This document shows, piece by piece, positions 8,375-60,500 of a stretch of DNA of 64,000 nt. Source of the DNA: Mytilus edulis (lineage: Eukaryota); contig NC_092346.1 in assembly GCF_963676685.1 (NCBI RefSeq), positions 27,962,001 through 28,026,000 of the forward strand, written 5' to 3'. How positions within the stretch are numbered: the stretch's first letter is position 1; each line of letters opens with the position of its first letter. The position numbers were made by a program, and so were the translations under genes. Under the pieces are notes generated by a model, which did no database searches, had not been told where the DNA came from, and saw nothing but the letters and a program-made list of their open reading frames with translations.

Positions 8375-8418
8375 ACGCCATACACGCGTTTCGTCTACAT
8401 AAGACTCATCAGTGACGC
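8375..8418 (-). ncRNA. Minimal type I hammerhead ribozyme, core intact
   Basis: Minus strand reads GCGUCA CUGAUGA GUC-UUAUGUA-GAC GAAA C GCGU GUA UGGCGU: helix I GCGUCA/UGGCGU, CUGAUGA and GAAA core, GUA cleavage triplet. Confidence 0.8.
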
Positions 8419-9919: not shown

Positions 9920-10042
9920 TTTGCGAGAGAAAAGTACAAAAAATAGTCAAATCATTTGGAGACAGAAATTATTTTGCTGCAATTAATTCTATATAAAATT
10001 TAGAATTGAAATGAGAAATATTTCAAAGAAACAATAACCTGA
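9920..10042 (-). repeat. Exact 123-bp inverted copy of 9171-9293
   Basis: Reverse complement of tcaggttattg...ctctcgcaaa. Absent from duplication copy B. Confidence 0.9.
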
Positions 10043-10179
10043 TCACTGAAACACTGAGGCTTTTTTTTCCTCAGACATAGATTACCTTAGCTGTATTTTG
10101 CAAAACTTTCAGGAAATTTGGTTTTCAATGCTCTTCAACTTCGTACTTCATTTGGCTTTTTTAACTTTTTTGGATTCGA

Positions 10180-10222
10180 ACGTCACTGATGAGTCTTTGT
10201 AAACGAGACGCGCGTCTGGTGT
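10180..10222 (+). ncRNA. Degenerate hammerhead ribozyme copy
   Basis: ACGUCA CUGAUGA GUCUUUGUAAAC GAGA C GCGC GUC UGGUGU: GAAA is mutated to GAGA and helix II is mismatched. Confidence 0.65.
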
Positions 10223-14619: not shown

Positions 14620-16825
14620 CGATAATCTATATCATTAACGGGAAGCTTAATACAAAATTTTATGATAAAAGAGATGATTTTTCATTTCCTGTCGTTAAGT
14701 CTCCATTGTTAGACGGTCACGTTCCCTTGTCATCATCTTATGGTGTTTATATATATCAACTCTTACGATTCGCTAGTGTATTTAACTAATATTAGATTTG
14801 TAGGACTCGGAACCGCGATGGTACTCCGAACCGCGATGGTCACGCTTAGATGCGATGCTGAAGTGCGTGCTTTATCATGCCGAAGTGCGATGGTGTCATT
14901 GTAACCCTATCTTGTTGATAGCTACGCCGAAGTGCGATGGTGCTAACGTGGAAGTGCGATGATCTACACAAATCTCATTTGCTAAGCTTTTCTTGTCGAT
15001 GTTTAAGTCAATGTAAAATAAAGACTGAATTTGAAAATGTGTCAAAGAGACAACAATTCGAACAAAGAGTACAAAAAATACAACCGATGCCAACCAAAGG
15101 GTCTTCAACACAGCGAGAAAAGCCCACACCTAGAGGTTGAATTCACTTGGTCCCTAAACTCAAAAGTTTATTTATTAAAAAAAAAAAGTGAACGTCATAC
15201 TAAAAATTCTTTACATGAAGATAAACTATAACTTCTTTACATAAAGATAAACTAAAATTTAAAACCATAAAAGACCCACAAAGTCCAGAGGCTCCTGACT
15301 TGGGACAGGCGCAAAAATGCGGCGGGTTTAAACATGATAAGTGAGAAATCAACCCCGTCCCCTATAATTCTAGCCAATGTAGATTTAACAAAAAAACATG
15401 AATACACACAAGGTAAAACTCAGTTTAAAAGAAGTTGGAGTACGATGTCAGAATAGGTAACAAAAGCAACTAATTGTATCAGCAAAATGACAATGATAAA
15501 CTAAACAAAAAAGGACTACTGGCAGTTACTGACGTGGTGAGGGTTTTATAAAACTTACAAATACAAATACTTCGCGAAAGAGGTAAGACAGGGGACATTT
15601 ACAAAAGGTTCTTTTTAGCGTACGATTGTGCGTGACATTCCCTCAATACATTTGAGTCTGCAGACAAACTCTCTTCATTAAAATATTATAATCGAGGCAC
15701 TCATGGGAAAAACAACGTATAGGCCTACGACCATCGCACTTCGGCGTAGACCATCGCACTTCAGCGGGACCATCGCACTTCGGCGTAGACCATCGCACTT
15801 CAGCGGGACCATCGCACTTCAGCGTCCCCATCGCACCTCAAAGTCCTACAAATTTTAGGGAGAGAAATTTATGTATTACTGAAAAATTATTACACCAGGG
15901 TTTTCGATATCACAAACTAGTCAAAACATTTACTAAATTTAATCATCGGTACAAGGACATCATTCGTAAATATAACTCAACATGCAGACATCTTATACGT
16001 TCAGGTATTTTACATCCAATCTTTTACGGTTATATACTTTACAAAGCACAAAAATGTCAGTATTCACATCAAAAAGCTAACAAAACCTTTAAAAAAACGT
16101 ATTAATAAGGGATATAATTACGATACTGTTATCAGGTCGTTAAATATTGCATAGTTTTACTTTAATATTGATTCATTAATAGGGTCTTTGCATCGGAACT
16201 AAGCACATTTATTTTAAAACCAGTGTTAGCATGATCCGGGTTATGTTCTTCTCATATATCTTATGATGGTATAATACTAAACCCCTAACGGTAGGGATTG
16301 TGCTTGACATTTATATGATGAAGTCATAATCTTTCAATCAGTTGAAATGAGGTCTGGAGCGTGCATGTCAGTTACTGCTAGTAGTCTGTTGTTATTTATG
16401 TATTATTGTCATTTTGTTTATTTTCTTTTGTTACCTCTTCTGACATCGGACTCGATCTTCTCTTAAACTGAGTTTTACTGTGAGTATTGTTGTACGTTTG
16501 TTTTAACTACATTGGCTAGAGGTATAGGGGGAGGGTTGAGATCTCAAAAACATGTTTAACCCCGCTGCATTTTTGCGCTTGTCCCAAGTGAGGAGCCTCT
16601 TGCCTTTGTTTGTCTTGTGTGATTTTTTAAGTGTAGTTTCTTGACTATAATTGGGAGTTTAGTGTGACGTCCATTATCACTGAACTACATGTAGTATAAA
16701 TATTTGTTTAGGGGGCCGCTAAAGGACGCCTCCGGGTTTCGGGAGTTTCTTGCTGCATTGAAGACACATAGGTGTCCTTCGGCTGATGACTTCTCTATGG
16801 TTGGGTATTGTCTCTTTGACACATT
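14620..16825 (+). mobile_element. Penelope-like retroelement RT 3' fragment, interrupted by a TIR element
   Basis: NGKLNTKFYDKRDDFSFPVV...SYGVYIYQLLRFAS before 14798 resumes as ERNLCITEKLLHQGFRYHKLVKTFTKF after 15850. Confidence 0.8.
14799..15850. mobile_element. Non-autonomous TIR DNA element with subterminal tandem repeats (superfamily unresolved)
   Basis: Termini tgtaggact...agtcctaca. Inverted subterminal repeats (aagtgcgatgg / ccatcgcactt). Splits the RT frame. TSD unclear. Confidence 0.7.
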
Positions 16826-19800
16826 CCCCTTTATGAACAATTAAACTTACTTGATAACTTGAGTATAACTAGTTTTGAGATGCAATATTTTTTTCTATCT
16901 GTATGACTAATTTTACCGACTGGTTTCTATAAATCGAGCTTTCTCTAAAACTTCATAACGGTCGGACTGCATGATGTATTTCAATTGTTTGTTTCAATTT
17001 CCTGTACTTTGGAAAAAAAATTATATCTGCCGTAAAAGATGTTCGGACTATTTTTCGCGTGTGGTACCTTTTTCTTTTGACACTGTACTAACTATGTAAC
17101 CCTTTTAATTCAATATTAAGTCTGTGTATTTTAAAAAATTCGTACAAATCAAAACAAAATATTTTAATTGATAACACAATACAGCGCAGGTGTTTCCTTT
17201 CATGTTATTAAAGCTAGAGTTTCGAATGAAAGAGTTGACATCATCTCTTAGTGTTTCTTACGGAGGCCTTTATGGAATATATGTGTCTGAGATGACAACA
17301 GATATATATTTATCGTAACTACAATTTCTTCCCATTTATTCGATTGTGGTATCGGCGAATGGCACTAATATACGGATTGCTACGTGCATAAGCATCATTG
17401 CCAGTCGCAAAAGTTATCGGTAATCGTGTGGCTTATCTTTAGGTTTGGTTATGTGAAGCATTATTGGTGTCGATTGTTGTTGGCTTTGTTTCTTGTTTTT
17501 TTCTGTTTGTCCATGGTACTGAAAGTTTTTGTTCAACTTATATTTTATCGAATAGGCCGAAAAAGTATTAAAGTCATTTCTTATCATTTGAATCTTAATT
17601 CCACGTTAAACCGGAGTAAATCGTGAAAAAACGTTGATGACGTCACGGTCACATTACAAAATTATGGCTTATGAGCTGATAAACAAAACGACGTCAGCCA
17701 ATCAGAAGACGTGTTACGTCCAAAATTTAATTATTTTTTAATAACACTCTGTGTTCCGCAATAAAAAAAAAGAAGAAAAAACTAAAATTGAAAAATTGAA
17801 AGCTCAAACACATCAAACGAATGGAAAACCTTCGAAATAGAAGTGTTTGTTATTAATCTCACACAAAGTTTTATATATCATGCTATTAAAATCCCCGAAA
17901 CCGTTTCTTTTATAAGACAAATTATTATCATTTAAATGATGAATAAACCATTTGGAACTTTAATTGGCTTAATACTTTGATGAGAGTATAACACAATTTT
18001 ATCATTGTTTTAATCCATTATCTATGCATCTTTTTCATGGTTATAGTAATTGTAAATTTTTCGTAGAAATTACTATAAGACAATAATATTCAAAATCCTT
18101 CATATCCTGGTATGCCTTAAATAGAACCAAAAACTCTTAAAGTCTCGAGAAATGTCTTACATCTTATAACAATAGTTATCAAAGGTACCAGGATTATAAT
18201 TTAGTACGCCAGACTCGCGTTTCGTCTACATAAGCCTCATCAGTGACGCTCATATCAAAATATTTATAAAGCCAAACAAGTACAAAGTTGAAGAGCATTA
18301 AGGATCCAAAATTCCAAAAAATTAAGCCAAATACGGCTTAGGTTATCTATGCCTGGGATAAGAAAATCCTTAGTTTATCTCGATAAATACAAAGTTTTGT
18401 AAACAGGAAATTTATAAAAATAACCACATTATTGATATTCAATCTTAACAAGGATATCATGTGCAAAATAATCACAAATTAAACCTGTTGCAGCCAGAGG
18501 GACACATATGTCAATAATTTTAATTGTTGTGTCCCTTTAAAATAACATAACGAAGTTCGAACCGTGTTTTATTTTTTTCAAATTGGTCCCCAAAGTTAAA
18601 AAAATAATTTATTAGAACGTGTCGTCATTTATCGATTGAGGTCATTGTTGGGAGTGTGCTACCTAACCTGACATCGGACTCGGACTTCTTTTGAACTGTG
18701 TTTTACTGTGCGCTTTGCTATGTGTTTCTTTTTCTACATTGACTAGAGGTATAGGGGAGGGTTGAAATCTCACAAAACATTACTCCAGCTGCATTTTTGC
18801 GCCTCTCCCAAGTCAGAAGCCTCTGGCCTTTGTTAGTTTTGTATATTCTTTTTCATTTTAGTTCATTATTTTTATTTTAGTTTTGTGTGACGTCCATTTT
18901 CACTGAACTAGTACATAATTCTAATTAGGGGACAACCGAGAACCAACTCCTTGTGCGGGATTTTCTCGCTGCATTGAAGACTTATTGGTGGTCTTCAGCT
19001 GATATCTGCTCTTTGGTCAGGTTATTGTTTCTTTGAAATATTCCTCATTTCAATTTTCTATAGAATTAATTGCAGCAAAAGGGTCAAAATGATTTCTCTC
19101 TCCAAATGATTTCACCACTTTTTATACTTTTCTCTCGCAAATACGTGCAAATTTCCATTAAATTTTATGATAAAATGTAAAACATGTTGTTTCTGTGTAT
19201 TTTCTCGTTTTCTTAAGCAGTGATATCCATCAAACACTGCTGTTGTCATTGGTCATCCTGTTGGTATCTTCTGCAATGTTCAGTTATTTTCAATGTGCGT
19301 TTTGATTTAATAACAAATCTGTGAAGGGTGTTATGCGTTCCAAAATTAACAAGAACACATTGTCTGTACCAATCAGGTAATCTAGATCGTACGCTGTTCG
19401 TTCTTGTATGTTTGTATGTGTTCCTTTCTACTGTTCAGTACTTTGTACATGTTACCCGCTATAAGTATTTTTATATAACAATAAAGATGCCTATACAAAT
19501 AAAGATAAGTGTGCATCGATATCATCTAAACACTGGGATACACATGATTTTCTGTTTCTATGTATTCTAATTCGTAATAGGTAACTTGTGTTTTGCGGCA
19601 TTCAAAATAAATAAATTCAACTGGAATCATCACACATCGTGTTTAATGTAAATTAATAAGATAAAAGTAAAATCACAAAAATACTGAACTCCGAGGAAAA
19701 TTCAAAGACATAATCAAAAGGCAAAATTAAAAGCTAAAACACATTAAACGAATGGACAACTACTGTCATATTCCTGACTTGGTACAGGTATTTTCGTATG

Positions 19801-22800
19801 TACTAGAAGACTTCAACGTTGACGGTTAGAAGTGCAATTATGTTGTTATAGGTAATCATGGGCGCGGTTACTGCGATGTCATTAATGAAGAAGGCCCATA
19901 TTTTAGAACATTTACAATAACAATGAATAAGGCAACCTAAATCATCTATTCAAATGACGAAACGCGCGTCTGGCGTATTTACTAAATTTAGTCCTGGTAT
20001 CTGTAATGAGTTTATTTTCTACATTTTCCATTAAAAAATAACTTATGATGATTTTATTTATAAGACATCCAGCAAGCAGATAGTCACAATTTATTTTTTT
20101 AACGAATCTTCTGCTTTCGCCCCAAAATGAGTTTATATAAATTGTAATATTCTAAAGCACGTATTTTGTTAGATTGGTATCGTCATTAATAAAAAAAAAA
20201 AAAAAGAAGATATATCACACAGTAATGGTGATGGCGAAAAATAAATATTATGAAGAAAGGGTATGAAAACAATTACGAAAATCCTTTAAAAAAAATCAGA
20301 AAAAATATTTGTTTAGTTTGTTTGTTAGAAAGGTTAAAACAAATATCAATTTCAAAATGAAGCCAAAATGGAGCTACCAATGTCAGAAAAGTCGTAGATC
20401 ATTAGATGTAGCCATGTCGATCAACAGGAATAATAGAATATTTCATAAATCACTCACCGATGCCATACACGATTAGTTTGTCTTCTTGGTGTAGAATAAA
20501 AAGTAAAACAAGATACCCCAGTCGACCACACATGTCTGTCTTATAAGTAAGATACATACATCAAATATGCTTTGTACATGTTTGGGTTTTGCATGCAACG
20601 GTTTGATTATCATGAATTTTCAAAATATCCTTTGCGCAATCAATTTTAAGCATGACATTGATCTGTTTGCTTAATAAGAAACAATTACAAAAATAGAACA
20701 TCTTTAGAGTTGGTTGCAACCTTCTTATCAACATGTCTGCAAACGAAAACACATGTTTCTGACACAGACGTCTATAATCAATTGTGTCTTTCAAATATTC
20801 AATTAAATAAAATAACAATGCATTGTACACATAAACTGTTAAACTAATTCAGGTACATTTTACTTTTTAAAAAACTTTTGTTCTTATCATTGATTCTTGA
20901 TTATAAGAACCTAGTATGATTTGTTTATGCAACAAAACTCGTCTAGTAATTTCCAAACTTGACAAACTGTGAAATTCTACCCTTTTAGACAACAAAAGAA
21001 GCTATGTTGGTTTTGTAAATATTACTTTTATTGTGTAATCGTTCTGTGGTAATCCATTTGACGTTGGTCCGTACTTATGCATCCCATCATTGTGTTATTA
21101 TATTTTCAGATTTATATTTTTACGTAACTTCTGGGTCCCATGGGTCAGATGTACAAATATTACATTGACAAATATTATTATTATATTGTATATATATACA
21201 CAATGTCACAATAGTACACACATTCGTATTCGTATTCGTTATTACGCTATGGTAGAGTTGTGTATCCTTGTGTTTTATTTTTATGAGAGTGCTGGTCTAT
21301 ATGCCTTTTTGTGCTTCTTTGTTGATATATATTTGTTTGTATAGTTATTAAGATTATCACATACTGTTGACTGCTGAAACCGTACAGTTGCATAAAGTTC
21401 CACTATCTTGACAACGATGTGTGAACAAAACAAACATACATAATAGGTAAACAAATTGTCAAAAATATATTTAATATTAATAAAAGATAGTTGCATCCCG
21501 TTATCTTGTACGAAGATGAAAATATGGTTTGAATATAATTTTAGGGAAAGTTAAAGGGTTGAAGTATAGCATGGGACTTGGGGTGGAGGGAGCTAGCTCC
21601 TGTTTTTATTATATAAACTATTTTTTTTTAAAAGACCATTCGTGTAGTACCGAGTTCATTTTAAAACTGTTCGGAGCCCTTTTATCTTTTACTAAATATT
21701 GTATAGATTGACACTAAGAAAGATGCGCACATTAAAAAAGGACATGTTTCAATTGTCGCTACCATTGTTTTGCCTCTTTCTTCGAATGAGACCCTTCAAA
21801 AGCACGAAAATGTTTGTAAACCCTGAAAAATATCCTGAATTTTAAATTTGTTTTAAAGTGTTTTGTGGTTGCACAAGAAGCATATATCGGTGTCTTTTTT
21901 ATATTGAGTAAAATGCAGCTTCATGTAACGCATACAAAAGGTATAAGACGTTTTGTTACTTATATCCCCTAGTTCGACTAGGATTTTAAACATTACAGAA
22001 AAAATCAAGAGTGTTTTACAGGATTAAGAGTTTACTGTTATATGACATATATTTCGTAAATACTTCAATAGAAAAACTATTCATACGATGCAAAGCGCCT
22101 CTTGTGTTACGTGTTGGTCATCATAATAACTTAACAACTTATACAGGTATTGGTGATCAAACAAATGTAATTGCGCGCAACGGGTAGAATAGTATGACTT
22201 CAAACTTTCTTTTGGATCTCATCTCACTGAATGCATCTGCATTATTCATTGATGAATTTCTCATTGTTAAGTGTTCTTGCGTTTGTTTGGACTGTATTAC
22301 TGTTACGAAGTGATTTAAATTCAGAGATATATTTTAACATTGTCATATAAGCGGAACGTTTGGCCAGTCATAAAACTAGGTTTACACCACCATTTTTCTT
22401 AAAATGCTCTGTACAAGCTCTGGAGTATGGTAGTTGTTATCAAATAGTTCGTTTCTATGTGTATTTGCGTTTTTTTTTGTGTTTTTTTGTGTGTTTTTTG
22501 TTGTTGTTGCAGTACAGTGTTTGTGAAATTCTGTTGTTTTCCTCTTATAGTTGTAGTGTTTCCCTCGGTTTTAGTTTGTAACCGGGATTTGTTTTTTTCT
22601 AAATCGATTGTTGACTTTTGAACAGCTGTATACTACTGTTGTTTTTATCTAAAGTACGCTACTGATGTATCAAAAGTATCTCTTTCTGTTTTCTTCCTTG
22701 TTTTAAAAATATCTAATCTTGAATACAAATGCCTCTGAGAGTTTTAAACGACGGGGTACTACGGCTGTTCCTTACTTATTTTTGTTTTGTAATGAATTTG

Positions 22801-22836
22801 TCAATAACAAACTTTGTAATGACTGAAAATTAATAA
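15090..22836. repeat. Segmental direct duplication, copy B
   Basis: Collinear with 4868-13083. Confidence 0.92.
18206..18249 (-). ncRNA. Hammerhead ribozyme copy (paralog of 8375-8418), helix II mismatch
   Basis: GCGUCA CUGAUGA GGC-UUAUGUA-GAC GAAA C GCGA GUC UGGCGU. Confidence 0.7.
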
Positions 22837-34290: not shown

Positions 34291-35202
34291 AAAACAATTT
34301 TACAAAATAAATTACGAAAGATAACTAAAAGGTCTTTCTCTATATCCGATTTTACTGTTAAAACTACACACCCGCATAGATATACATACCATATAGGATT
34401 ATTTCAGTTGTTTAAATATTTTGCGGGTTAATTCATAGTCGGAAATCTTTTATCGCTGCGTAAGATTTTACATTATCGGGTGCACTAGTTAATACTATTG
34501 ATCTTCTTCACGATCAAGTATCGTCAAGGAACACTTCCTCATAGCGACATGCCTTAACTAACAATAACGTTATTGTATCTATGATTTTATAACCAACATT
34601 AATGGTATCGATCATTCATTTTTCCCATATGGGAAGTCTGGATCAAATACATTCACATGGTCATTTAGAAAGAAAAAAAACCATTTATTATTTTTAATGT
34701 GTTTTGTTTGTTTGTTTGTTTGTTTTTATTCGATTGTAAGTTGCCAAAAACTAATAAAGCAGAGAAAACACAAAGAAGCTTTCTGAATACTCGATTAGGA
34801 GTAAAATTCATAAATACAATGAGGTGTGGGCTATACGTTCATCAGACAGCAACTAAAAAAAAACAAATCCGGGTTATAAACTAAAACCGAGGGAAACACA
34901 TCAACTATAAGAGGAAGGTAACGGAACAACATAATAAGTTCACCAAAGACAGCTACAATCTTCAGGTAAACAATCAGTTTTCAACAATAAACAAGTTTCT
35001 GTACAATGTATTGAGCTCTTATTCGCCTCACATCTAAAAAAAAACCCAATAAAGTATAAAGAGTGAATAAAATTAATTTTTACAATTGCTTTTTAAGATG
35101 TGAGTATCTTTAAAATATAGCTAAATCGTTCTTATGATCCAGAAAATATTCAAACTTCACTTTCTTTTCTTGATTTCAGAGAATAGTAACATTTTAATTA
35201 GA

Positions 35203-38200
35203 ATGGTGGGAATTTCTTCCGCGATTTTGAACTGCATTCCGGTTGAAATATTAGTTATTCTCCATACAATCTCAGTAATGACACTGATTCCAGTTCAGTC
35301 ATATTATTTGATAGACAAAACGGCAAAGCAGCATAATCAAGCTCATATTTTAAAAGACTCGGAATCAGCTTGTCATGTGTCAAATGAAACCAGTACTAGT
35401 CATAGGAACGACTCAAGTGATATAATACAAAGGGAAGCAGCAGAGAACTTAATGTACTTAAGTTTATGCGTAACAATTGTTTCAGTAATTCCGATATTTT
35501 TGTTTGGGTACCTTTCAGATGTATATGGACGACGACTAATGTGGATTGTATGCGCCTGTGGTACACTGGCTAAAGAAATAATTTTACTGCTTACGGTAGT
35601 ATACGAACTTCCTACTTGGGTGTTGTATTTTGGACAAGTTATTTTTGCATTGACTGGCACATATAGTGGAGCAATGGTTATAATCTTTGGAAGTATTTCC
35701 GACACAACAGAAGAGGGTAAAGACAGGAGTTTCCGGATTACCGTTGTACAAGGAACAGGAATGCTAACATCAGCAGTTACAACTTTCGGAATGGGTTTCT
35801 GGATTTTCGAGGAAGCGTTTAAATTTCCAATCATAATGACATTGTTTCTAACTGCTATCAATCTCGTTCTGGGATTTCTTTTGCTTCCACAGAAAAAGAA
35901 ACCTGCAACCAAACTCAAGACAGTTCTTGCTCCTTTTAAAATATATATTGATGCAGAGCCAGATCGAAGACGAAAAATGTTTCTGTGCTTATCCGTATTT
36001 CTGGTGTTATCTTCGTGTTTGGTTGGCAAACTTGGATATCAGAAATTATTTCTCATGCGAAATCCGCTTTGTTGGAACGTTCTACATGTCCAAGTACTAC
36101 GTGCTATGCAAACACTATTTAACACCATATTTGTCATTGGGATTGTCCGCCTACTCCTGCGCATTACGTCAGAGAGTATTATTTTAATCTTTGGCATAAT
36201 TTCTACAGTTTCATACTTGATTGTGTTTGGTTTCTCGATGAATGACTTGATGGTATATTCACGTACGTATAAGAAGCCCTTCAATTTAATTTATGAAGAT
36301 AAGCACGATAACAATGGTAATTTAATAAAAAAAAAAAACAACTGGAGCAGAAATTGTCAGTTTTTCTCTGAAACTGCAATGCGACATGTATCAGATCAAA
36401 ATTTTATAAAACATGTATATTAAGTCCTTTAAAAAGGCCCAGTTGGATGCAATATTGATGCAAGTAGAGATAAAATTTATATTTAATCATTTCTCTCTTT
36501 TTCATCATAACAGATGAAGTGAAAGAAACAAATATTGATGAAATATTCCCGGGTTACATTTTTTATCATTTGGAAGGTACACTAAGGAATTGTCGGTCTC
36601 ACAGATGTAATATTACTCTACTTAAACTTCGTTATGAATTTCACCGTGAAGATTTAGTGATTTGATCCGAACAACTGTAGTAATACTTGTGTAGACAAAC
36701 CGCGCATCTGGCGAACTAAATGTTAACCTTTTTGTATATAATAACTTTTTACAATTGGAATAATTACAAATAAATACACAAAAAAGAGCAGCTAAACATT
36801 GAAAGGGAAACATAAGGGTTCAGGTTTTTTTTAATATTCACCTATTTAGTATTAAAAATACACGTATGACATCAATCGAACAGAAAATATACAAAAAGAC
36901 ATTCATATATTATTTTTAAAGAAACAATTTGATGTACACCATAGTTTCAAGTAACGTTAATAGGAGTTTTGAAGAAGCAGACAAATGTCTGGTCTGTCAC
37001 ATATGAGAATAACTTATTTTATTTGTCTGCTCAAATATATTGCTTTAATCATGGAAGCAGTATAAATGGCTGCTAAAAGTTTATTGTGTGCAGGTTTTTA
37101 CTGCACTTACCTTTTTCAGATGTGCTAGCAGGTTGCATGTCAATTTCAGCGTTTCCTATGCTAAGAGCCATCATGTCAAAACTAGTTGGTTCTGATGAAC
37201 AAGGTAATTGGTTCTTTATTGATTTATGGGGTGTTATTTTATTGAAGTAACTACACAGATCTGCATAGATTGTTGACATTTTAGTTATTTTTAATTATTT
37301 AGCAAGCAATGAGTTCCGTAAAACCTTGAAATAAAAAAATGCATTTAAGTTTAAGAAAATGAGGAGATGTGGTATGATTACCAATGAGACAACTATCCAT
37401 CAAAGTTAGAATAAATGAAGTGGATGTAACTAGTTTATTTGATGTAAATGTCACAATTAAAAAAGATAAGATAGTAATGCTTCAATAAGGTCACTTTTGG
37501 GGCCTTGCTAGAAGAGGTAAAAAATCATAAGTAAAATAAACCAAGAAACCTTTTGAAAAGTTTGATAATTTAGCATTAAAAAATCACTATGCATACAAAT
37601 ATCACTGCTGATGGACGTTCCGTCCTCAAAGATATCAACAGTCCAGTAGTCTTCTGTGTTGGCATTAAATTTAAATTATACGGTCAATGTCTGTATGAAT
37701 TCTACTTTATATAAGTTAATAAACAAGTAGTAGAATAGTAGAGATACTTAATTGGTATCCATTGAAATGCCGATTGTCTATCCAACAAATTCAACCATTA
37801 TGTTGATGATCAAAAAGTCCAGTACTTTGATGATATCATCTTCTGTGTAAAAAGATTTTCCATATTGATATAACAAAAAGCTCTGTTAAATGTGACAATT
37901 TAGTCGATCTTTCTATTGATCATTGGTAATAAAAAGGAAAATAACCCCAAAAAATAACTTTAGCAAATGGCAAATTCATATACCCAAAGTGTAAAGAGAA
38001 AAAACCAAAGTTTGATATATAACTGTGTGTAATTGAAGATTTTGGAATAGATCTTTAGACTTTTTCAGAAATCAAAAAAACAAAATTATGAGTTAAATTT
38101 AGTTATTGTTTATTTTGTTATAGATATTCTTTTAATTATACATGTTTGTGGAGCACAAACAAGCATCGGTGTTGTGTGATGTATTGGGACATGAAACAGG

Positions 38201-41698: not shown

Positions 41699-42808
41699 TC
41701 TAAAGAATAAGAATTAGAATTAGAACATTTATTGAATTCGATTAAAGGGCCCGTTTCCGAGCATATACTAATATGATATTAATTATACAGTATTTTTAAA
41801 GATAAATAATTACATTAATAATCAATAATTAAATAACTATACTCCATATACTGGATGGTGTTTGAAAATAAATAAAATAGAATAGTAACCCTCTCTCATA
41901 CATACAAAAACTGTATAACTGCTTAATGTATAATTAGTTTTTGGAATGCAAATTTTCTCTATTTTAAAACAAGTACTTATAAATCTTGACACTGACATAT
42001 TTACATTTTTAGACTCACATAATATCAACCGAATAATTTTTTCATTTCTTGAAAAATAAGGGAAGTTTTTACATTGGATACTTGCTTCATTAAGAATTAA
42101 AAACAAAATTATATGCAGTGCATGCTATTAAAAAATGATATAAATATATGGAATGTCATACAGAAAACATACATTACACAATCTTCATATTCCTATAAAT
42201 CCACAATGAAGGCTATGTTAATCTAAAAAAAAAAAAATCTTGCTTACTAGCTTTCATCTTTGAAAATCCACAGGTGACAAAATGTCCCCAATTAATCATA
42301 TCTCGTTTTATCTGGAACGTTTGTAGTAAATATTACATGACAAATTCGAAATTCGAAATAAGTTATATGTGTATATTCTACAAATTATAAAAATAACAAA
42401 TAACTAAATAGAAATCCAACCCTTTCGCTGTCTGTTTATTGTTTGTCACTGTACCGGATATAAGATTCTATTGAAAAAATATTTGCCGGGGTAGTTTAGA
42501 CACAGCGTGATTGCGAACCAGCACCTCTAGATAGGAGAACTATAAATTGATGCATAACTATCCATTGGTTAATAGTATTATACAAAACATGCCACTTTTT
42601 CGTTAATAAACGGGTGCTACAAGAAGAGAAGGATCTGTTCACCATTGAAATACAAAAAAAATGTAGAAAGAGTCGATTATGCAGGAATAAGCAGAAGGAA
42701 GTCACCGATTTTTTATGATTTTCTTTTTTAGGAAAGACGGATACAGCTTGTCTTCCTTATATAGTTGAATTGGTTGTCTTATCATACCTACAAGGTTATT
42801 CTATCTCT

Positions 42809-45800
42809 TTACAAAAACTGTGAGGTAAAAAGTTTCAATTTCAAGTTGTCAATCTCAAATGGAATTTGCTTGTCATTTTCTAGATTAATGTATGACAATT
42901 GTTCGAGTTCAGTTGGAATTTTGCAGCTATCAAGGACAACTAAAATCAGAAAATCTGGTCTTTTCTGCATAATATCCAAAATAAATGTCTTCAACAATGG
43001 CCATTCACGCTCTAGGAAGGAACCGCTGAGAAACATCAGTGTGCTGCGACTAGTATGAACGGCATTAATGGCATCAAGAATGATGGAGCTGTACAAGTCA
43101 TGATCCACACATAAAGGCCTTCCTGTGAAAATAAATATCATCAAACGTTAATACAATTAAGAGTAGAAGACTACTATATGACAGTTGTTATTAAGGTCAA
43201 GGATCGGTAAATGAACTAGTCCATAGATTTAAAAAAAAATTAGAACTCAACTAGATATTGAAAATATACATCAGAAAATGTAAAAAAAAAAGTATATGTC
43301 ACCGACTTCGTTTTCAAGAAAAATCCATTTTTCATATTAATTTTCAAATTTTTGATTTTAGAAAAACAAGTTTATTCTCCTGGAAGTAACATACTTTCTG
43401 TCAAATTTAACGTTGACGTTGTCCCATCGAAAGGTCGCCGGGTGCAATTTTAACATTGTAAAATCTGGTCAAAGAGACGTAATTCGTACAAAACGTCGCA
43501 ATATTTCGCGGAATCCGCTAGACGGCGTTCATTTACTGATACTTGACCTTAATTCGTTTCATGTGTTTGAGCTATCCATTTTGCCATTTTTTAAGTGACT
43601 TGCCGTCTTGAACTTCGAGTTCGGTATTTTTTTTTGTTATCTTACTTTTACAATTTTATAGAAAAACTGTCAGAAAATACTTAAACAACAGAAAAAGAAA
43701 ATAATATCCTACCTTTAAATCGAACAAAACTGAAGGTCAGCGAAAATTAAGTCTCTATTTTGATCTCAAACTAGAACTACCATTAGAACTAAAACCGAAT
43801 TTTAATAATTTTTCATAGAAATGTTTTCTAGCCTTCGATTGTGACAACCTACGGAATACGGAAATAAATGAAAGATTATAAGTTTTTTTCTGCCTACTAA
43901 CTTTCATGTGTTTTACATGTACTTGGTGTAGTATGTTGCAATGAATTTATAACTGTTGTGATATCTAATACTTTTACATTATATATTAAACAAGACGATA
44001 ATACAATCATGTGTTACTAAATATTTACCCCTTAGAGCAACATCGTCATCAAACAACTTTAAAGATAGCTGATTAAGTATAAAACTGTTGATCCATCCAA
44101 CATCATGTTTTCCTGTGATTGCTGAAAAGTCGTACTCGAATGAAGTTGGTGCTTGAAATTGTTCTACATTTTCATTGGTACATTGATCTCTCTCTTTGAT
44201 GACGTTGTCAATATTTGCTTGGGTATATACCAAAGGAGCATCTTCTGATCGTTCAAACGTATATTTCAGCAACCCTTCTCTGATGTTCGTTGAGAGGAAT
44301 GGTCTGGAGATAAGTTATGAAGCCACAAAGTTTTGTCAAGTTATATTTTACCAGATCAGATGTTAAAGCCTCACGTATTAAACCTATATTTTCATAATTC
44401 CTGACTACGTACGTTAAAATATGAAATATGTCTCTATATTCTTGCTTTCCTTGCAACATATACCAACAAATATTTGTGATATTTTTTGGATTTTCTTTCT
44501 TGGTTAATAAAAGAGCCCTCGTTGCCCACGCAGCAGCCGTTTCATATTCTCCTAAATCAAACAAAATGCTCCCAAATCTATTAGCGATTGCAAATGATTG
44601 ACCTTTGAGATGAATAGTTGTATTTACATGATCTAAAGCTTCGTTGATGTATTCCACATCTTTAACAAATTGTTTTCCAAAATTTTTACACTGAGGAAAC
44701 TTTGCAAGGTACTGACAAACCTTAGCTAAATCACAATAATCTGATGTGATAAAGTGCTCTTTCAAAAGTAGAATGCCATCTTCCCTGGCGTTTAATAGAA
44801 ATGTCTTACATTTTTCCTGATCTCCTGACTTTTCAAGTAGATCAAACATTGAAATGTAAACATTGTTTCTCGTTTTATACTCAGCTAAATGTGTCTTTTG
44901 GTTTAAGTCAATAGCGGTTGTAAGCAATGTTACTGCTTTTTCTAACATGCCTAATTTACATTGTTTAGTGGGCTCATATTTTGACAACATCCATAATGCA
45001 TCCCCATATCGATGTAAACTTATTTCGTCGTTTGGGTAAATACGTACAGCATTAATAAACCCTAGTTTCGGATCATTTTGCATCGCTTCAAATTCACCTC
45101 TTCCATTTTCAACGCTGCTCACGTCAATCTTCAAACCATCACGTGAGTTTTCCTTTCTTGATATCAAGATATGTGCAATATAGGCGTACGATCGAGCTCT
45201 GTAAAAGGTATACTCTTTTACATCTTCGGGTAAATCTATAACAACTTCTAAAAATAGGCGACAGGAATCATTGGTCAGTTTAGTTGATTTACTCTTCGTA
45301 TCTGCGTCCGTATATTGTCGGTAGGAACTGTAGAGTCTATTACAAGCCATAGCATGGTAAAATTTCCAAATAGTTATTTCCGATTTAGATACAGACAAGT
45401 TTGTAAGCCTCTCGATTCCCTCCTTTAAAAAAGCAACGCCATTTCGACGTTTTTCTAGCAAATGTTCATTCAAAAGCTGTTCAAACTTTGGATTGAGTAA
45501 ACACTGGGGATTAAATGCATACTGCGCTGCATTTTGAAGACGTGTTTTTCTTTCACCTCTGGCATTGCTTAGTTCTACAATCAACTGTTTGGAAGCATCG
45601 TTTAAACTAAACCGCGCTTCCTTTTCGTAGTTATCAAAATCTTCAAACATGTATACATAGCCTTGCTCTAATAAACAATTAGCAATTTCCTTATTGTCAT
45701 CAAAGGTATTGCTTGTTAAAATTGTTTTGATATCATCATCGTACTTTTTCGCTTCTTCATCCAGCTGGATTTTCCTATGCATTTCTGCAAGGTCTGCCAG

Positions 45801-46061
45801 GGTGTTCAGGTGCTTTGGATAAGTTTCTAAGCTGAGTTTTAACTTTTGTATATTCTTTTTCAAATAACTGCGACGTGACAAACGATTGCCAATTAGATTT
45901 TCCATGAGAGTGATAGCTTGTTGTACAATCTCATTTTCCTTTACTTTTGCATCTTCTAATATTTCCCTTCTTTTTTCTATTTGACGTGCGTCTCCAATAT
46001 GCATTAAGTTCAGATTAAGTCTGTACAGTCCTGGACAAACTGTAATTGTAGGTTCTAACAT
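42809..46061 (-). CDS. TTC22/IFIT-like tetratricopeptide-repeat protein with C-terminal TIR domain (one frameshift near 44273)
   Basis: The 602-aa ORF has CPGLYRLNLNL, YPKHLNTLADLAEMHRKI and IANCLLEQGY, similar to the TTC22 N-terminus as recalled (LPGHFHL, HPGNLNAWANLA, AARCLAEQGY), plus TPR-like helices. Removing 1 nt continues the frame to FEYDFSAITGKHDVGWINSFILNQL (TIR box 1). A phase-1 intron (44028-43123) joins exon 43122-42809 (DAINAVHTSRSTLMFLSGSFLEREW...IPTELEQLSYINL). Repaired length 781 aa. Confidence 0.82.
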
Positions 46062-46867
46062 TTTTGTTGGAGTTGTATCAATTTAAAAACATTTCTTCTA
46101 AAAGTGAAAAAAAGTAAATTTTGTTTAATGGCTTATGTATATACAGTTTGTACTTTGGTCGAGAGTTTTAGTGAGATAACAGGAAACATTCATCCTAGCG
46201 ATGGCACCGATATTGTTATATTTGAACTTCATACTTTCCCCACAGTTTATGTTTTATTTGGGTGTTGTACTATAAAGTTATTTTTTCTCTTACTTAAATT
46301 TTTTACTGTAAGACGATGTGAAGAAAAAGTTTGTACAAAAAAATAAACAATAAATAAGGATACATCAATAAAAACGGTATCACAATCCAACCACTTTTAT
46401 ATTTTCTAACAAGCAATTAAAAAATTTGAATAACCCTGGTAGGTCATCGAGATGGAAGTTTGTTTAAAGATATTAAACATAGTACATGTGTTTGGTTTTA
46501 TCAATGTCTTTTGTACATCGGTACATAATTGTTCCCTTTTCATGGGATAATTCTGACCTAGTTGTTGTTGATAATTCGTTGGTGAATTTCCTTAGTGCCT
46601 ATTATTTTTATTTGTACAGAGTCCTTTCCTATTAATGTGTTTGACAATATCTGGTACAAAAGACACATCGTCCTTTCGTATAAACACAAACATTAGAAAT
46701 TTACAGAATGGATCGTATCAAATGAAATACATGTGTTTATATAAAAAAAAGAAGATGTGGCATGATGGTCCATGAGACAACTCTCAATAAGAGATAAAAT
46801 GACACAGAAATTATAAACTATTGGTGACCGTACGGTCTGGAACAATAAGCAAAGCCCATACCACATA

Positions 46868-51370: not shown

Positions 51371-52846
51371 AAAAGAGGGACGAAATACACCAGAGAGACA
51401 GTCAAACTCATAAATCGAAAATAAACTGACAACGCCATGGCTGAAAATGAAAAAGACAAACAGACAAACAATAGTACACATGACACAACATACAAAACTA
51501 AAGAATAAGCAACACGAACCCCACCAAAAACTAGGGGTGATCTGAGGTGACCCGGAAGGGTAAGCAGATCTAATACTAAGGCTTTTCTACCTTAGGCATA
51601 GATTACCTTAGCTGGATTTGGCAAAACTTTTTGGAATTTTGGTCCTCAATGCTCTTCAACTTCGTACTTTATTTGGCCTTTTCAACTTTTTTGGATTCGA
51701 ACGTCACTGATGAGTTTTTTGTAGACGAAACGCGCGTCTGGCGTTTATACAAAATTTAGTCCTGGTATCTATGATGAGTTTATCCACATGTTGCACCCGT
51801 CGGGTTGCTTCTGTGATAACAAATCCGGTAAATAGTCTAATTATCTAGGTCACATTCATGAAAGGGAAGGGGAATGTAGTTAAGACGTTAGGAATATATC
51901 CGATATCCGATATCATTTGTGAAACGGTTATTCCATAATGGTCAACCAACTCGTGATGGTGGCGTCCATAAAATATACGAAGGGATGATTTCAATCTCAC
52001 CATTTGGAACTCTTGATTTAATAGCTTCTTTGTGAGCAGTAACCCTCTATCCAGAAAATCATGATAGGAAATACAATCACGGGAATATCGTATCAATTGG
52101 GAAATATATACCCCGTATGCAGATGCTGCTGGAATGTTTCTACTTAGAAATGGAAAGTTCATAATTAGAAAGCTGAAATCATCTCTTTTGTTGTAAAGTT
52201 TTGTTTTCAACCGACCCTCATTGTCAATTTCTAAATGTAAGTCAAGATATGAGACCGACTTAACTGTATCTGTAGTATCCTTTATCTTTACTTCGATGGG
52301 ATGCATACGTTCAAGTCACCAAACTTTGAATTAGTGAAAGAACATCATCTATATAGCGGAAAGTGGAGTTAAAGGACATTGCTAACATCTTATCTTTCTT
52401 CCTAAGAAGTTCCTGTATGAAATCAGCCTCATAATAATAAAGAAACCAGTCGGCAAGAAGAGGGGCACAATTTGTTCCCATTGGAATGCCGACAGTCTGT
52501 TAAAAAAACCATCCTCCGAACGTAACAAATATGTTGTAAATCAAGAAATCAAGCATCTTGATAATGTCAGTTTCATAGAATTTTTTGTTTGAATCAAAGT
52601 GATCCTTTACAAAGTAGGATTTATCCCTCCCTAAGACAAGATACTTGTATCTACGTTGACCATTCTTTTTTTATGAAACAAAGCAATACCAACTCTTTAA
52701 ATTTGTCTTTTAGTTTGGAATGTGGAATTATTTGTGTATAGTGTAGAAATGTTAAATGTTTTAATACTATTACAAGATGAAAGAGAGTTAGATTGTATGT
52801 ACTCTAAAAGATCTTTGAAATTTTTAAGTATCCACATCTGATTCAC
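51371..52846 (-). mobile_element. 5'-truncated Penelope-like retroelement (RT pseudogene)
   Basis: Broken frames give VNQMWILKN, GIPMGTNCAPLLAD, FRYIDDVL, SYLDLHLEID...KRDDFSF...YGVYISQLIRY. The RT thumb runs to the ORF end with no downstream GIY-YIG, compatible with Naiad-type permuted or EN-less elements. Confidence 0.9.
51701..51744 (+). ncRNA. Minimal type I hammerhead ribozyme, intact
   Basis: ACGUCA CUGAUGA GUU-UUUUGUA-GAC GAAA C GCGC GUC UGGCGU, with palindromic helix III loop and GUC cleavage site. Lies in a ~210-bp insert (51572-51783). Confidence 0.85.
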
Positions 52847-53194: not shown

Positions 53195-56100
53195 TCATTT
53201 AAAAATCCTTTGAATATCCATAACAATAGCAAATATAACAGGAACAATCAGTAGAGCGATGCCGACCATGCCAATATTTCTCGAAGACTTACGCGGATCA
53301 TATGCAGATATTTTAGTGGCTTTGTACGATTTTGTTTCCTTCTTGTTTATAAAAATTGCATTCTTCAATAATGTAAGTTTTTCCGCTAGTTCTTCAGTTG
53401 TCCAGACAGTGCTATTTATCTGCAAACAGTTTGCACATGAACACTCGGAATACCTATCTGCAACTGTTGATGTTAGCTTTAATTTTAGCACGTCGGTGGT
53501 TAATTCTGTAATTGAATCCGTTGTTATGTCTGTAGTCACTGAGGGAATGTAGCTTGAAGATGGCGAATAAGTATCAATCGTCGTGTCGGTTAAACATTCT
53601 GAAAGTTTAGAGATTGATATTTAATGTTAAACATTGACACTTCAAACTTCAAACATTTCAAAATGTGCAAATGGAACCCAAGTATGTGGATGGACATTAA
53701 ATATTATTTTCTGAAAGAACGCAGGTTATAAACATATCGAATATATAAACTGGGAAATTAAATAATGGAGTACTTTCCATATTTACCTCGACATAGACAT
53801 TAACAGCTTTTGTAAGGTGTTTAACTTAGGGTGAATGTAAATCTTTGTTTGTTGTTCGTCCATGTGCCTTAAAACGAATTTCATATAATACAAATTTAAA
53901 TGTCGTATCTATATATATGCTAATAAGGATATATATTATGATTTTCAAACTATCCAGCGAATACAGAAGATATTGTGGGTTTACACTAAAAAGTAAAATC
54001 ACAAAAATACGGAACTCAGAGGAAAATTCAAAACGGAAAGTCCCTATTCAAACGGCAAAATCAAAGGATAAAACACATCAAACTTATAAATTCGAACTTA
54101 TCTTCAAAATGACATACTTAAAAGAGTATACCTAAAAACGATATGAGATAAAAATGATAATTTATAAACATTTGGATATTTCTGGAAATTAATTTAATAA
54201 AAACATGCAAATTTTAATTGCAATACCTCAAACTTGCTTTGAATTTTTATTTTTTTTATTTATCGTTGATGAATGGAAGTTAGTCGTGTAAACATTTTCT
54301 TTTTTTTATTGTTCAGTTAACAAAGAGGACGATCGATGCATGTTTTAGCTTTTGATTTTACTATTTTATGAGGGACTTTCCGTTTTAAAGTTTCCACGGA
54401 GATCGGTGTGTTCTGTTTTTACACACTTGTGTCAGATGCTCTGCTTACTCTTTGGAACACTTGATATATCCCCACATGTTGCTGGTAATTGTTTAGCTCA
54501 GTCTGAAGGTAGAAAACTTTTGTTTCTCTTTTCGTCGTTTCTTTTTTTTCCTTGCCCCTTTGAGTTTTAATTGTCCGTTTTTGAGGTGTCTATGTGCTAT
54601 GAATAGTATATAAATATTCACAAATATCCATCCAATAACCCTATATTACTGATATCTAACCTATCTTATATACGCTCAGTCTGTATGAACCTCCACACGT
54701 TTCACTTGAATTTCCACGACAGTTCATATTACAATCAGTAGGGGGTCTCGGTAAAAAATTGTCAGTGTTAGTAACATTTGTACAAAAGCACTGGGAATAT
54801 GCCTGGAATGAATCATATTTATTAGTAAACATATTAACATTTGCATGTATGATATATTCTCATGTTATTTCTCATTTATTTGCTAATACTTGAAAATATT
54901 TTCATTTGATTTCTTAGTAACATATAAGAATCCTTACAAAATATTATATCTTACAACAGAGCATCTGAAATATGAAAACTAAGAAAGTGTGACAAATCCT
55001 TGTTATTACATATTTGGAATAAACTGTTGTTTTAAAAGTATGAAACATCGTCATATAATTTGTTTATATATGTCCAAAATAGTAGGCGTAAAGGGTTAAT
55101 AGCTACGAGATATGACAATATTAAAATATGATTTTTGTGAATCATTACCGAAAGTAAAATAGTGAAAAAATGATTCGCTTTTAGTAGCGTTTTGCGTTTT
55201 AATTTTGTCAAAATAAGCTTAAGAAAATCGCTGATGAATTATTCAGATCTTATTGAATCTGTATTCACATGACTCTCTTCTTAACGCATTAGTTAGAGAC
55301 AGTTTAGCATCAATGAGGTGTTTTCAGTTATTAAATGTACACCAATGTCAATATTGAAACAAGGGTAAACCATTTGATCGACAAAAACTCATTCTCTTAC
55401 AGGTAAAACGATAATAAACATATATTATTGACCTATTACATGAAATCAAACAGACCTTGAACAATCCAATTGCACACGTTTGCTATATATATATATATAT
55501 ATATATATCTATAAGAGTAAAATCACAAAAATAATGCACTCCGAAGAAAATTCATAATGGAAAGTCTCTAGATAAATGAAAAAAATTGAATGCACAAACA
55601 TATCAAACGATTCGACAACAACATTCTTATTCCTGCTTTGATACATGCATTTTATAATATAAAAATGGTGTATTAAACCTGGTTTTATAGCTAGCGAAAC
55701 CTCTGACTTGTAGGACATTTGTAAAAAATTCTATTATATTGACAACGATGTGTTAACAAAACAAATAGACATGATAGTTAAAAAATATAAAAAATGACTT
55801 TCTAACAGCGGTATACTACTGTTGCCTTTATTTAACAGTAAAAGTAATACTTATAAAGTCAAATAAAAGAATACTATAACACGTTATGAAGATGACAAAC
55901 AACGTCAGTACACAGACTCTATACTTCAAGACCATTGTGTATTATTATGAAGTTATCACGGATATTTGTTATATTGGTACCTTATGGATTTGATTAGAAA
56001 AAAGGACTATATTTATGTTAATAAGAAAAATAAAAATATAAATTGGAGAAAAGATCGACATTTTCTTTTCACACATTATTACCAGCAAAGAAAAGGGCAA

Positions 56101-57761: not shown

Positions 57762-60500
57762 GGACATAATGACTAATTGTCTGGAGAGGCAGTAAAACAA
57801 CGTCTGCATGGTTCGTTTGATCGTATAATCTCAACTCAATACAGTAACATGATACATAACAAATAGAAAAACGTTAACAAAAAATATGATGACGTTAACA
57901 ATGTAAATGGAAACGGCGTTAAAAATAGTGTTTTAAATGTTTGACGCGTAAGTTAAACTGTCTCAAAATCACCGACATACTCGGGGCCACCAAATGCAAT
58001 GTCCCTTAACTGTGATATATAGTGACATGCGGAAAGAACAAAAATAGATTTGTCTCACAAATAAGAAAAATATTAAATTATTAAATTGAATTTGACAGTT
58101 TTTTCACAAATAAGAAAAATTAACAAATCTGTTCACACACGTTAGTTTCATCGTTTGATTCGTCTCAGATAACAGTCCATGATGTTGACTTCTAATTGGT
58201 AATAACGTTTTCTGCCTTTTGTTTAACCAATTCCATGTTGAAGCGGCAGCGGACGGAAGTATTGTTTCCATGGTGACTTAGCTGTGTTCTTTCCATTTGC
58301 GGGTGTATTACACTTTCCCCCGTATTTATCTACAACTTCCGACTGACTCTTTGTGTGATCGCTTCCTGAAACTCCCAAGCATTTTAAGCTCAAAATCTTT
58401 TCCAAGTTGCCAGCAACAGCTCTGTGGTCATTTAAAATGTTCATTATGGCAGATTGATTTGTACCACTTCTTCCGTTCCTAGTCATAACGGGTCCGGACA
58501 AGAGATAATCAATTCTCGATTTTACTGCGGTTGGTTCATCTCATCTGATTTATTCTTCAGCTATTGACCAGTAATAATCTGCGCCAATCAAAAAGGATAT
58601 GTTGAACTTGTCCTCTGCAGATATCGGATGTGCGAGTCGTAATTCATGCAAGTATTTCAGTGCTTTGACTTCCTTCCGTGATGTCATGCGAATAGAGGCG
58701 GCAATTTTTGGTACAATGATTGCTTCAATCTCTATTTTGTTATCCTTAACCGTTACAATATATCAATTTTTGCTTTTGCAAGATGACGAACCTGTCCTTC
58801 ATTCCCTCCAAATCCATTTATTTTAAGTGCAATCTTTTCGGTGGACTCAATTTCTAATTTGTGCGCTAAATCTACAGTTATGAATGAGTTCTGTACTTCT
58901 TCGTCAAGTAAGATATTTGTCATGATCGATCGGTTATCGGACCAAACTGGTGTTACGGCAGTTTTCAGTAACAGAAAAATGCAATAATGCGTTCGGCTCT
59001 AGTTTCCATTACGGCAGTATGTGCTACGGTCTTGGCTGTGATATTCTCGTTTGCGGTCAAGCTCTTTGATTCTGTGGTATCTACATGTATATTCGTGTGA
59101 TGTCTCTTTCAATCTACACTGTCGGCAGTTAAATTTAGATTTACAGTTAGCTACTCTGTGATTTACTAAACAGTTGAAACATTCTCTTTTTTGTTTTACA
59201 ATTTCTATGCGTGTCACAACATCTTTTACGTTTTCACAAGTATTCGAATGATGCGGTTCTTCACAAAATTTCTGACGTGTCACCATTGACTGTTTTTTGT
59301 TTTTGACGTTCGTTGTTCCGGCAATAAACGCAGTGGTCGGTAAAATTTCTAAGTCTTCATTACTTGGACATATAGACTGTCCTGCGACCTGTACGCATAC
59401 TTCCCTCTTAATTGCTTTTCTCAATGATTAGATGTCCCAGTCGTCGTTTCCACGGTCTTGGATTATGTTTTTTCGTACATCGGACGGAAACTTATCGTAT
59501 ATTTTAGGCGTAAGAATGGCTCCTAATGTACTCTCGTTTGTTCCTAACGATTCTAATCCGCGTATGCTACATTCAATTTCAACGGAAAAGTTTCTCAAGC
59601 TGTCTGCGTTTGACCTTGGCGCTGGCAAATCAATCAAATTTTGTATATATTCGTTCGTGATTTTGTGGTTCTGACCAAACATCTCTCTCAGTATTGCTAC
59701 GGCTTGATAGTAATTTGACTTGTGAGTGGTAATCCGGCGATACATTGCGCGGCTATTCCCTGAATTTTGCAAATACATAAATTTCTGCACGTCTGTTTAT
59801 GTTTGGTTATCATGTATTGTTGATTGATACGCATCCAAGAAAGGTTACCAGTTTAACAAATTGCCATTAAAATATGGTAGATTCAATTTTGACGATCTGT
59901 ATTGCATATCATTATTCTACATGGGATGTGGAGTTGATAAAAACAAAATCTGATGCATTTGGATTTAATTTCTGATTAGAGCTAATTTCATTTGATTTGT
60001 TCTTCTGTTTTGAACTTGATGAATTGCGTACTTTTGTCAAAATTCGTTCTATATCTAAAACAAACCGATCTGATTCTTTTATCTCTGCTTCCATGTTCTC
60101 CTCTGCAATCTCCTCTAAAATTTCATTATCATGTCCCGAAAGAATATCCCTCTTCTTTTACAAGGTTTCACATAGGCTTTCTATTTCGTCGCGTTGTGTT
60201 TTTTCTTTCTCTAATTCCTCTTCAATCTTTGATATGTATCTCCTTGCGGCTCCTCGATGGCCCACTCTAATGGCCTTCTTCTTTGTCGTTCTATCCTCTG
60301 GTCACGGCACCAATATGACGGATGGGTTAACTAAAAGTCTGGTCAGGCAGTAAAACAACGTCTGGTTTGTTTGATCGTATAATCTCAACGCAATATAGTA
60401 ACATGATACATAACAATATGATGACGTTAACAATGGAAATGGAGTTAAAAGTAGTGTTAATGTTTGACGCGTAAGTTAAACTGTCTTCAAATCACCGACA
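57762..60500 (-). mobile_element. Bel-Pao LTR retrotransposon, internally deleted and degenerate
   Basis: LTRs at 60316-60500 (TG..CA) and about 57762-57977. PBS at 60301-60312. gag remnants (AIRVGHRGA, PYFNG, Cys/His knuckle CFNCLVNH..CRQC), protease-like ILLDE and KSPWK. RT, RNase H and integrase core not seen. Confidence 0.88.
60301..60312 (-). promoter_or_regulatory. Primer-binding site complementary to the tRNA-His 3' end
   Basis: Plus strand GTCACGGCACCA equals the 3' end of metazoan tRNA-His(GUG) plus CCA, 3 nt from the 5' LTR. Confidence 0.8.

Follow-up and report, generated by a model that had tools for sequence, protein, structure and literature searches.

Does the minus-strand locus at positions 42809-46061 of a 64,000-nucleotide stretch of the Mytilus edulis genome (NC_092346.1, positions 27,962,001 to 28,026,000; hereafter the window, from whose first letter positions are counted) encode an intact protein in which a tetratricopeptide repeat (TPR) solenoid is fused to a TIR domain? 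A first-pass annotation, made from the letters alone, had read it in this way, joining three open reading frame (ORF) pieces through a 1-nt repair and one phase-1 GT-AG intron into a 781-aa protein with a TTC22/IFIT-like N-terminus and a C-terminal TIR. The analysis presented here points elsewhere: the locus is probably a young pseudogene or null allele within a mussel-expanded family of TTC22/IFIT-like TPR-TIR proteins, an intact tandem copy of which is located 59 kb away.

The three ORF pieces are found at 46061-44253 (602 aa, with an ATG start), 44272-43979 (97 aa) and 43144-42809 (111 aa). Comparison with the intact tandem paralogue L002, which lies outside the window (C3:27947001-27948800; 94% identity in the solenoid; open frame of 722 aa), shows that 65 nt are missing from the window at the junction of 44265 and 44264, where its sequence reads GTTGCTGAA directly followed by ATATACGTTTGA. 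The L002 region as a whole (C3:27945625-27948800) has the 65 nt and an open exon 3. Approximately 22 residues that are present in the full-length homologues aligned at this point (ALLESIDKRNPSNTLLYSRIQR in M. edulis) are correspondingly missing from the window. Assembled contigs from two RNA runs of different studies, X15 and X16, cover the same site and carry the missing segment: an X16 contig has 71 letters where the window has six, and the loose ends of X15 contigs translate to KALLESIDKR. The loss observed against L002 and the homologues is repeated in DNA, where contig 3 of run X1 (43695-44442; Logan, separately assembled) carries the same deleted junction with 0 differences and 0 gaps over 748 nt and a junction depth of 5.5, like that of its flanks, and no contig containing the 65-nt insert was found among the X1 contigs listed. 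The deletion is thus real DNA in at least the X1 individual, and the window copy ends before its TIR, with translation from the ATG stopping at a TGA (44255-44253) after 602 residues. A C-terminal TIR in the same frame as the solenoid is found in L002 and in the orthologue P0002, and is absent from the window copy.

The frame break could alternatively be a slip of sequencing or assembly in an intact gene that yields a working 781-aa TPR-TIR protein, and both flanks of the break are indeed well conserved (ratios of nonsynonymous to synonymous divergence, dN/dS, of 0.31-0.57 against L002), while exon 3 of the window type is transcribed and spliced in X15. The true difference is, however, 65 nt and not one, as seen from L002, the homologues and the RNA contigs, and a 1-nt repair would still leave about 22 homologue residues missing; the X1 DNA contig, furthermore, reproduces the junction without a single difference. 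As such, a slip is very unlikely, and neither the 1-nt repair nor the intact 781-aa product of the first-pass annotation can be upheld. A mini-intron bridging the first two ORF pieces was also considered and rejected. The sole good GT..AG pair nearby (44351-44304; 48 nt) keeps the frame and so cannot mend the shift, while the homologue alignment shows a deletion instead.

The features of the locus, all on the minus strand, are as follows.

46062-46097, minus strand: 5' untranslated stretch, between a likely acceptor ttttag (46100-46098) and the ATG.

44265-46061, minus strand: coding stretch for residues 1-599, an all-helical TTC22/IFIT-like TPR solenoid (ORF, homologues, AlphaFold2 (AF2) model and hhalign).

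44253-44264, minus strand: out-of-frame tail I-Y-V and premature TGA, just downstream of the deletion junction (44265/44264).

44029-44263, minus strand: linker and first half of the TIR (YDFSAITGKHDVGWI...DDDVALR), out of frame with the start codon (ORF; N-terminal TIR halves of relatives).

43123-44028, minus strand: phase-1 GT-AG intron of 906 nt, with a high-copy dispersed repeat at approximately 43168-43635 (RNA contigs).

42812-43122, minus strand: second half of the TIR, from the BB-loop region to the C-terminus, followed by a TAA stop at 42811-42809 (Pfam TIR_2 and a bridging profile, described below).

42745-42808, minus strand: 3' untranslated stretch, given at its minimum extent (X15 contig 9 covers 42745-43123 with 0 differences).

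The remainder of the gene structure proposed by the first-pass annotation, namely the three pieces and their phase-1 GT-AG intron, is borne out. The donor (G/GTAAAT) is located at 44028/44027 and the acceptor (TTTCACAG) at 43124/43123, and the 244 nt from 44272 to 44029 amount to 81 codons plus one base, so that the splice joins ...DDDVALR-G to RPLCVDHD.... Transcripts link the TPR exon to the exon at 43122-42809, a point on which the earlier proposal had staked itself: X16 contig 17, which extends 3' to position 42700, skips precisely 906 nt with CT..AC ends on the plus strand, while X15 contigs have loose ends at 43123 and 44028, each of which reads into the opposite exon. Across the non-repeated intron segment at 43636-43986, neither X15 nor X16 has any RNA depth. 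Over the intronic repeat (43168-43635), the summed depth in X1 is approximately 800-2400, against about 6 in the flanks. The raw RNA reads of a further run, X22, fall almost nowhere on the exons and land only in this repeat, with loose ends leading into other loci. At the 5' end, X16 contig 23 follows the window sequence as far as 46098, where the good acceptor ttttag is found, and then continues for 28 unrelated letters. These do not occur in the window itself, and the six genomic places that they do match are dispersed, with none close to the locus, so that no upstream 5' exon can be placed; such an exon was rejected, and the loose letters probably represent a repeat or a chimeric contig.

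The RNA observed appears to stem mainly from the intact type, given that most of the variant letters of the X15 and X16 contigs are those of L002. X15 contig 9 (42745-43123), by comparison, is identical to exon 3 of the window and is spliced. The dN/dS between the window copy and L002 is 0.31 in the solenoid, 0.57 in the linker and first half of the TIR, and 0.32 in exon 3, which suggests that most of the divergence between the two copies arose under constraint and, as such, that the lesion is probably recent or still segregating. Synonymous divergence between the two copies is 0.076 in the long exon and 0.29 in exon 3, a disparity suggestive of gene conversion or a mosaic history between L002 and the window copy. 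Further copies are scattered through the 1.37 Gb genome of this mussel: the solenoid query gave 18 matches at at least 14 loci (contigs C1, C2, C3, C7, C8 and C9, with several in tandem), and the TIR exon gave 10 matches.

The window copy might nevertheless be of use in its shortened state. The 602-aa ORF has both its ATG and its stop, its TPR part has a dN/dS of 0.31 and hemichordates possess TIR-less TTC22-like proteins (P0108 and relatives), which is consistent with a product that is made and employed as a TPR-only protein, for instance by competing with full-length paralogues for ligand. The premature stop, however, is situated approximately 224 nt upstream of the last exon junction. In animals, a stop that far ahead of the last junction normally triggers nonsense-mediated decay of the mRNA. 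Moreover, every RNA contig that crosses the site includes the 65 nt, and the downstream TIR pieces remain open and conserved, which fits a recent lesion better than a settled short form. We therefore consider a functional TPR-only product quite unlikely. A recently disabled copy is the better account, in which the 65-nt linker deletion shifts the frame and halts translation after 602 residues, leaving at most a TPR-only protein whose mRNA would be expected to be open to nonsense-mediated decay; the window copy itself is most likely non-functional.

The solenoid places the locus in a recognizable family. With each ORF piece used separately as query, the first piece retrieved homologues in M. 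edulis (92% identity) and M. galloprovincialis (82%; 803 aa, with a TIR), as well as a more distant paralogue group (33-35% identity) with a Pfam TIR. The Pfam TPR matches to this piece are confined to residues 491-523 and are all sub-threshold. An AF2 model of the 602 residues, built on a 14-sequence alignment, comprises approximately 30 helices (predicted local distance difference test, pLDDT: 72.9). When this model was compared with solved structures by Foldseek, generic TPR solenoids ranked first by E-value, while the TM-score was highest for IFIT5 and IFIT1. VIA-align likewise placed IFIT5 first (4hot_A; Z: 23.6; 425/476 residues; root-mean-square deviation, rmsd: 8.7), followed by IFIT1 (Z: 18.1-18.7), with LGN as the next family (Z: 17.1). 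In an unfiltered search of representative folds nothing exceeded 17.1, and the IFIT representative in that set, the IFIT2 chain 4g1t_B, reached a Z of 12.3. A feature search of the ESM Atlas returned TTC22 clusters at the top (0.97; 212/256 features) and IFIT clusters next. The predicted solenoid thus has the whole-protein TPR clamp architecture of the IFITs, with Z values above that of LGN, and the TTC22/IFIT-like character that had been assigned to the N-terminus is supported by the Atlas ranking, by the structural alignments and by the reach of the family profile to TTC22-like proteins described below.

Sequence searches draw a different boundary. Against the PDB, the pieces and two family profiles matched only generic TPR proteins, in the segment at residues 450-530, and retrieved neither an IFIT nor a TIR chain; among all PDB sequences, no IFIT was found at E <=10 (phmmer with a single protein, and profile A2) or at E <=1 (profile A3), and the identity within the structural alignments is 12-13%, which falls short of IFIT membership at the sequence level. 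Since the family profiles find no IFIT in the PDB, the IFIT link, as modelled, is one of fold and language-model features, and not of demonstrable sequence membership.

These results bear on whether the intact members could be IFIT-like sensors of RNA 5' ends, whose TIR would start signalling of the NF-kB/IRF type. The modelled structure matches IFIT5 bound to ppp-RNA, and IFIT1, over the whole length (with IFIT5, the Z of 23.6 and the 425/476 residues given above), IFIT clusters are among the closest Atlas neighbours, and the closest invertebrate BLAST matches of the IFITs are reported to be TPR proteins of lancelets and acorn worms (PMC3688568). The structural match is nevertheless achieved at an rmsd of 7-9 A and the low identity noted above, the profiles find no IFIT chain, the Z for the IFIT2 representative is only 12.3-13.9, and the same study places those invertebrate proteins outside the IFIT family. 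Peptides are, furthermore, the usual partners of TPR solenoids. The role of an RNA-end sensor is therefore rated unlikely, and a solenoid that binds some ligand or partner is the more general expectation for the intact members.

The C-terminal part, the second half of which is encoded by exon 3 (the third ORF piece), was compared with TIR domains by several routes. The paralogues P0005, P0008 and P0009 pass the Pfam TIR model PF01582 (23.9-24.8 bits, against a cut-off of 21.3), and a bridging hidden Markov model (HMM), trained on the C-terminal sequences of relatives that match Pfam TIR strongly, gives 38.3 bits for exon 3 of the window and 28.8 bits for the exon-2 piece. A weak match of exon 3 to the oyster TIR-STING chain 6wt6 was also obtained (E-value: 0.96). 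Together with a sub-threshold TIR_2 match and the alignment, these scores sustain the earlier assignment of the C-terminus as homologous to TIR. In an AF2 model of the full-length orthologue P0002, a b-a-b-a-b-a-b-a-a pattern is apparent at residues 667-801, but with a pLDDT of only 25-57, and Foldseek with this model, dominated by the TPR part, returned TPR proteins only. The highest Kyte-Doolittle mean over 19 residues is 1.23, in keeping with the absence of an obvious transmembrane segment noted in the first-pass annotation.

The TIR of this clade is divergent and, judging from the alignment, degenerate. Conservative relatives retain the motifs YDFFVSHS, CIADRDFxPG and WCxYE, in place of which the clade of the window has YDFSAITG, RPLCVDHDLYSS and WPLL--K. 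TIR domains that cleave NAD carry a catalytic Glu after the W-C motif (E642 in SARM1; also in plant TIRs). At the corresponding position, the window reads WPLL--K and P0005 WCLL--K, as opposed to WCQFE, WCLYE and WCEYE in relatives, so that the catalytic Glu is absent from the window copy and its clade, along with the Pro-Gly of the BB-loop. NAD cleavage is consequently unlikely in this clade, and for its TIR a role as scaffold or regulator is more likely than an enzymatic one. A self-contained sensor-effector with an NAD-cleaving TIR, as in SARM1, plants and bacteria, would resemble prokaryotic TIR/TPR defence, and the Glu is retained within WCxYE in the conservative relatives P0022, P0025, P0076 and P0092; a Tir/Tpr anti-phage pair of bacteria has been described (bioRxiv 10.1101/2023.05.26.542521). 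That bacterial system is, however, composed of two genes, its likeness to the mussel family comes without demonstrated homology, and the window copy and its clade no longer have the Glu, all of which leaves this proposal highly implausible. Members of the family consist of a TTC22/IFIT-like TPR solenoid of about 600 residues, a linker some 60 residues long and a C-terminal TIR whose coding sequence is interrupted by a single phase-1 intron. For the intact members, which are probably cytosolic, we would envisage that binding of a ligand or partner by the solenoid may be passed on by the TIR, through TIR-TIR assembly that signals or regulates.

Several observations weigh against the account of a disabled member of a TPR-TIR family. 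The X1 sample may be the source individual of the assembly, in which case both would document the deletion in one and the same animal. No RNA contig with the deleted junction of the window was seen in X15 or X16, where the crossing contigs all contain the 65 nt, and a dN/dS below one would equally fit continued use of the copy as a TPR-only protein. Exon 3 of the window scores below the Pfam cut-off for TIR_2 (PF13676; E-value: 1.8e-4; 22.4 bits, against a cut-off of 28), the TIR region is modelled at low confidence, and the mechanism envisaged for the intact members is drawn by analogy only. Even with these points counted, the probable reading of the locus is still that of a young pseudogene or null allele beside an intact tandem copy.

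The family itself extends well beyond mussels. A profile of the N-terminal region matched only 135 proteins at E <=0.001 among 1.84 billion representatives. The matches in bivalves derive from Mytilus, the scallops Mizuhopecten and Argopecten, and Solemya, while those in Branchiostoma, the starfish Patiria and Acanthaster, and the acorn worm Glandiceps are named "tetratricopeptide repeat protein 22-like" by NCBI. The profile E-values are 7e-12 for P0076, which like P0092 is from Branchiostoma, and 4e-6 for P0111. Lancelets have at least 20 TTC22-like genes of this type. The lancelet proteins and the Patiria protein carry a Pfam TIR (TIR_2; E-values: 2e-17 to 2e-5), and no Pfam TIR was found in the acorn-worm TTC22-like proteins (P0108 and relatives). 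When the mussel family and the deuterostome set were aligned profile to profile by hhalign, the probability was 100 and the E-value 1e-39 over 695 columns spanning both the solenoid and the TIR. Since the alignment runs through both domains, the TPR-TIR fusion is old and common to these groups, and not an invention of bivalves. The window copy shares this homology along the length of its solenoid, together with the family motifs. For the family as a whole, homology to the "TTC22-like" TIR proteins known from lancelets and starfish extends from end to end. The tie to vertebrate TTC22 comes only from the Atlas feature score and the names given by NCBI; a word search from P0076 and P0108 retrieved lancelet and hemichordate proteins alone and no vertebrate TTC22.

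In the order of solenoid, linker and TIR, the family is the same as the invertebrate "TTC22-like" TIR proteins (XP_019643233 of Branchiostoma, which is P0076, and XP_038075920 of Patiria, which is P0096) and as the Mytilus "TIR domain-containing protein" models P0002 and P0005. Motifs held in common with the TTC22-like TIR proteins include a CPG near the N-terminus, HLNTLADLA against NLNALANL, and LEQGYA against AEQAYA, whereas the window copy differs from them in its shifted frame, and its clade in a TIR devoid of the BB-loop Pro-Gly and the Glu, with weak Pfam scores. Vertebrate TTC22 is comparable in that it supplies the nearest named Atlas clusters and that NCBI names the deuterostome relatives after it; the vertebrate TTC22 clusters recovered are 496-569 aa in length, and none of the three Pfam families given per cluster is a TIR. 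The resemblance to IFIT1 and IFIT5 lies in an all-helical, clamp-like solenoid and in the best structural match obtained, which takes in almost the whole of both proteins, while the IFITs differ in having no TIR and the window family in having no IFIT match at the sequence level. IFITs have been reported from jawed vertebrates only (PMC3688568), and the position given there to the lancelet and acorn-worm TPR proteins, closest to the IFITs yet outside them, agrees with the present results.

With a TIR joined to TPR repeats and no transmembrane segment, the family also resembles the cytosolic "TIR-TPR" class of bivalves, which is listed in the legend to Fig. 1 of an oyster immune-gene census (PMC4346834); the term "TIR-TPR" is also among the abbreviations of an Aplysia study (PMC9334734). 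Our literature search found no paper naming TTC22 together with TIR, and the papers matching TTC22 and IFIT were gene lists. The architecture can therefore not be regarded as new, a possibility that the first-pass annotation had left standing: in public records the Mytilus, scallop, lancelet and starfish orthologues already bear annotations as TIR domain-containing or TTC22-like proteins, and the oyster class is on record in the census cited above. We conclude that the family is known but uncharacterised, with its domain combination already present in databases and oyster censuses, and that the window copy is a new, broken member of it.

A wider evolutionary scenario can be framed around this distribution. 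In molluscs, echinoderms and lancelets, the TTC22-like TPR-TIR proteins could preserve the ancestral bilaterian form of TTC22 and the IFITs, an IFIT-like clamp on nucleic-acid ends wired to a TIR, from which vertebrate TTC22 and IFITs would descend by loss of the TIR; mussels would then maintain a polymorphic, fast-turning set of sensors, with the present locus as a recently disabled allele. We hold this scenario to be improbable.

Several additional features can be observed elsewhere in the window. The regions at 4962-13083 and 15422-22836 form a tandem duplication with a period of approximately 10.4 kb and 85-91% identity in five blocks. Two similar ORFs of 114 aa each, on the minus strand at 74-418 and 53195-53539, share about 85% identity at the DNA level despite lying 53 kb apart, and both have a Thr-rich start, a CxCxxC motif and a hydrophobic tail. 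A 429-aa ORF on the plus strand (35134-36423) contains many hydrophobic stretches and has the appearance of an exon from a transporter that crosses the membrane several times. Finally, the ORFs on the minus strand at 51845-52306 and 58999-59790 resemble retroelement remnants, the second with a CxxC...H...C stretch like a zinc knuckle.

The locus alone carries little weight, as it is a disabled duplicate next to an intact copy, although it agrees with the picture given for oyster, in which immune gene families have duplicated in tandem and diverged (PMC4346834). Of broader consequence is that one homologous type of TPR-TIR protein spans bivalves, echinoderms and lancelets, and that its predicted solenoid is nearest to IFIT5 and IFIT1 among solved TPR proteins. 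Should an intact member prove to bind RNA ends, or to assemble with the TIRs of MyD88 or TLRs, the family would be a candidate invertebrate cytosolic sensor-adaptor and would bear on the origin of TTC22 and the IFITs.

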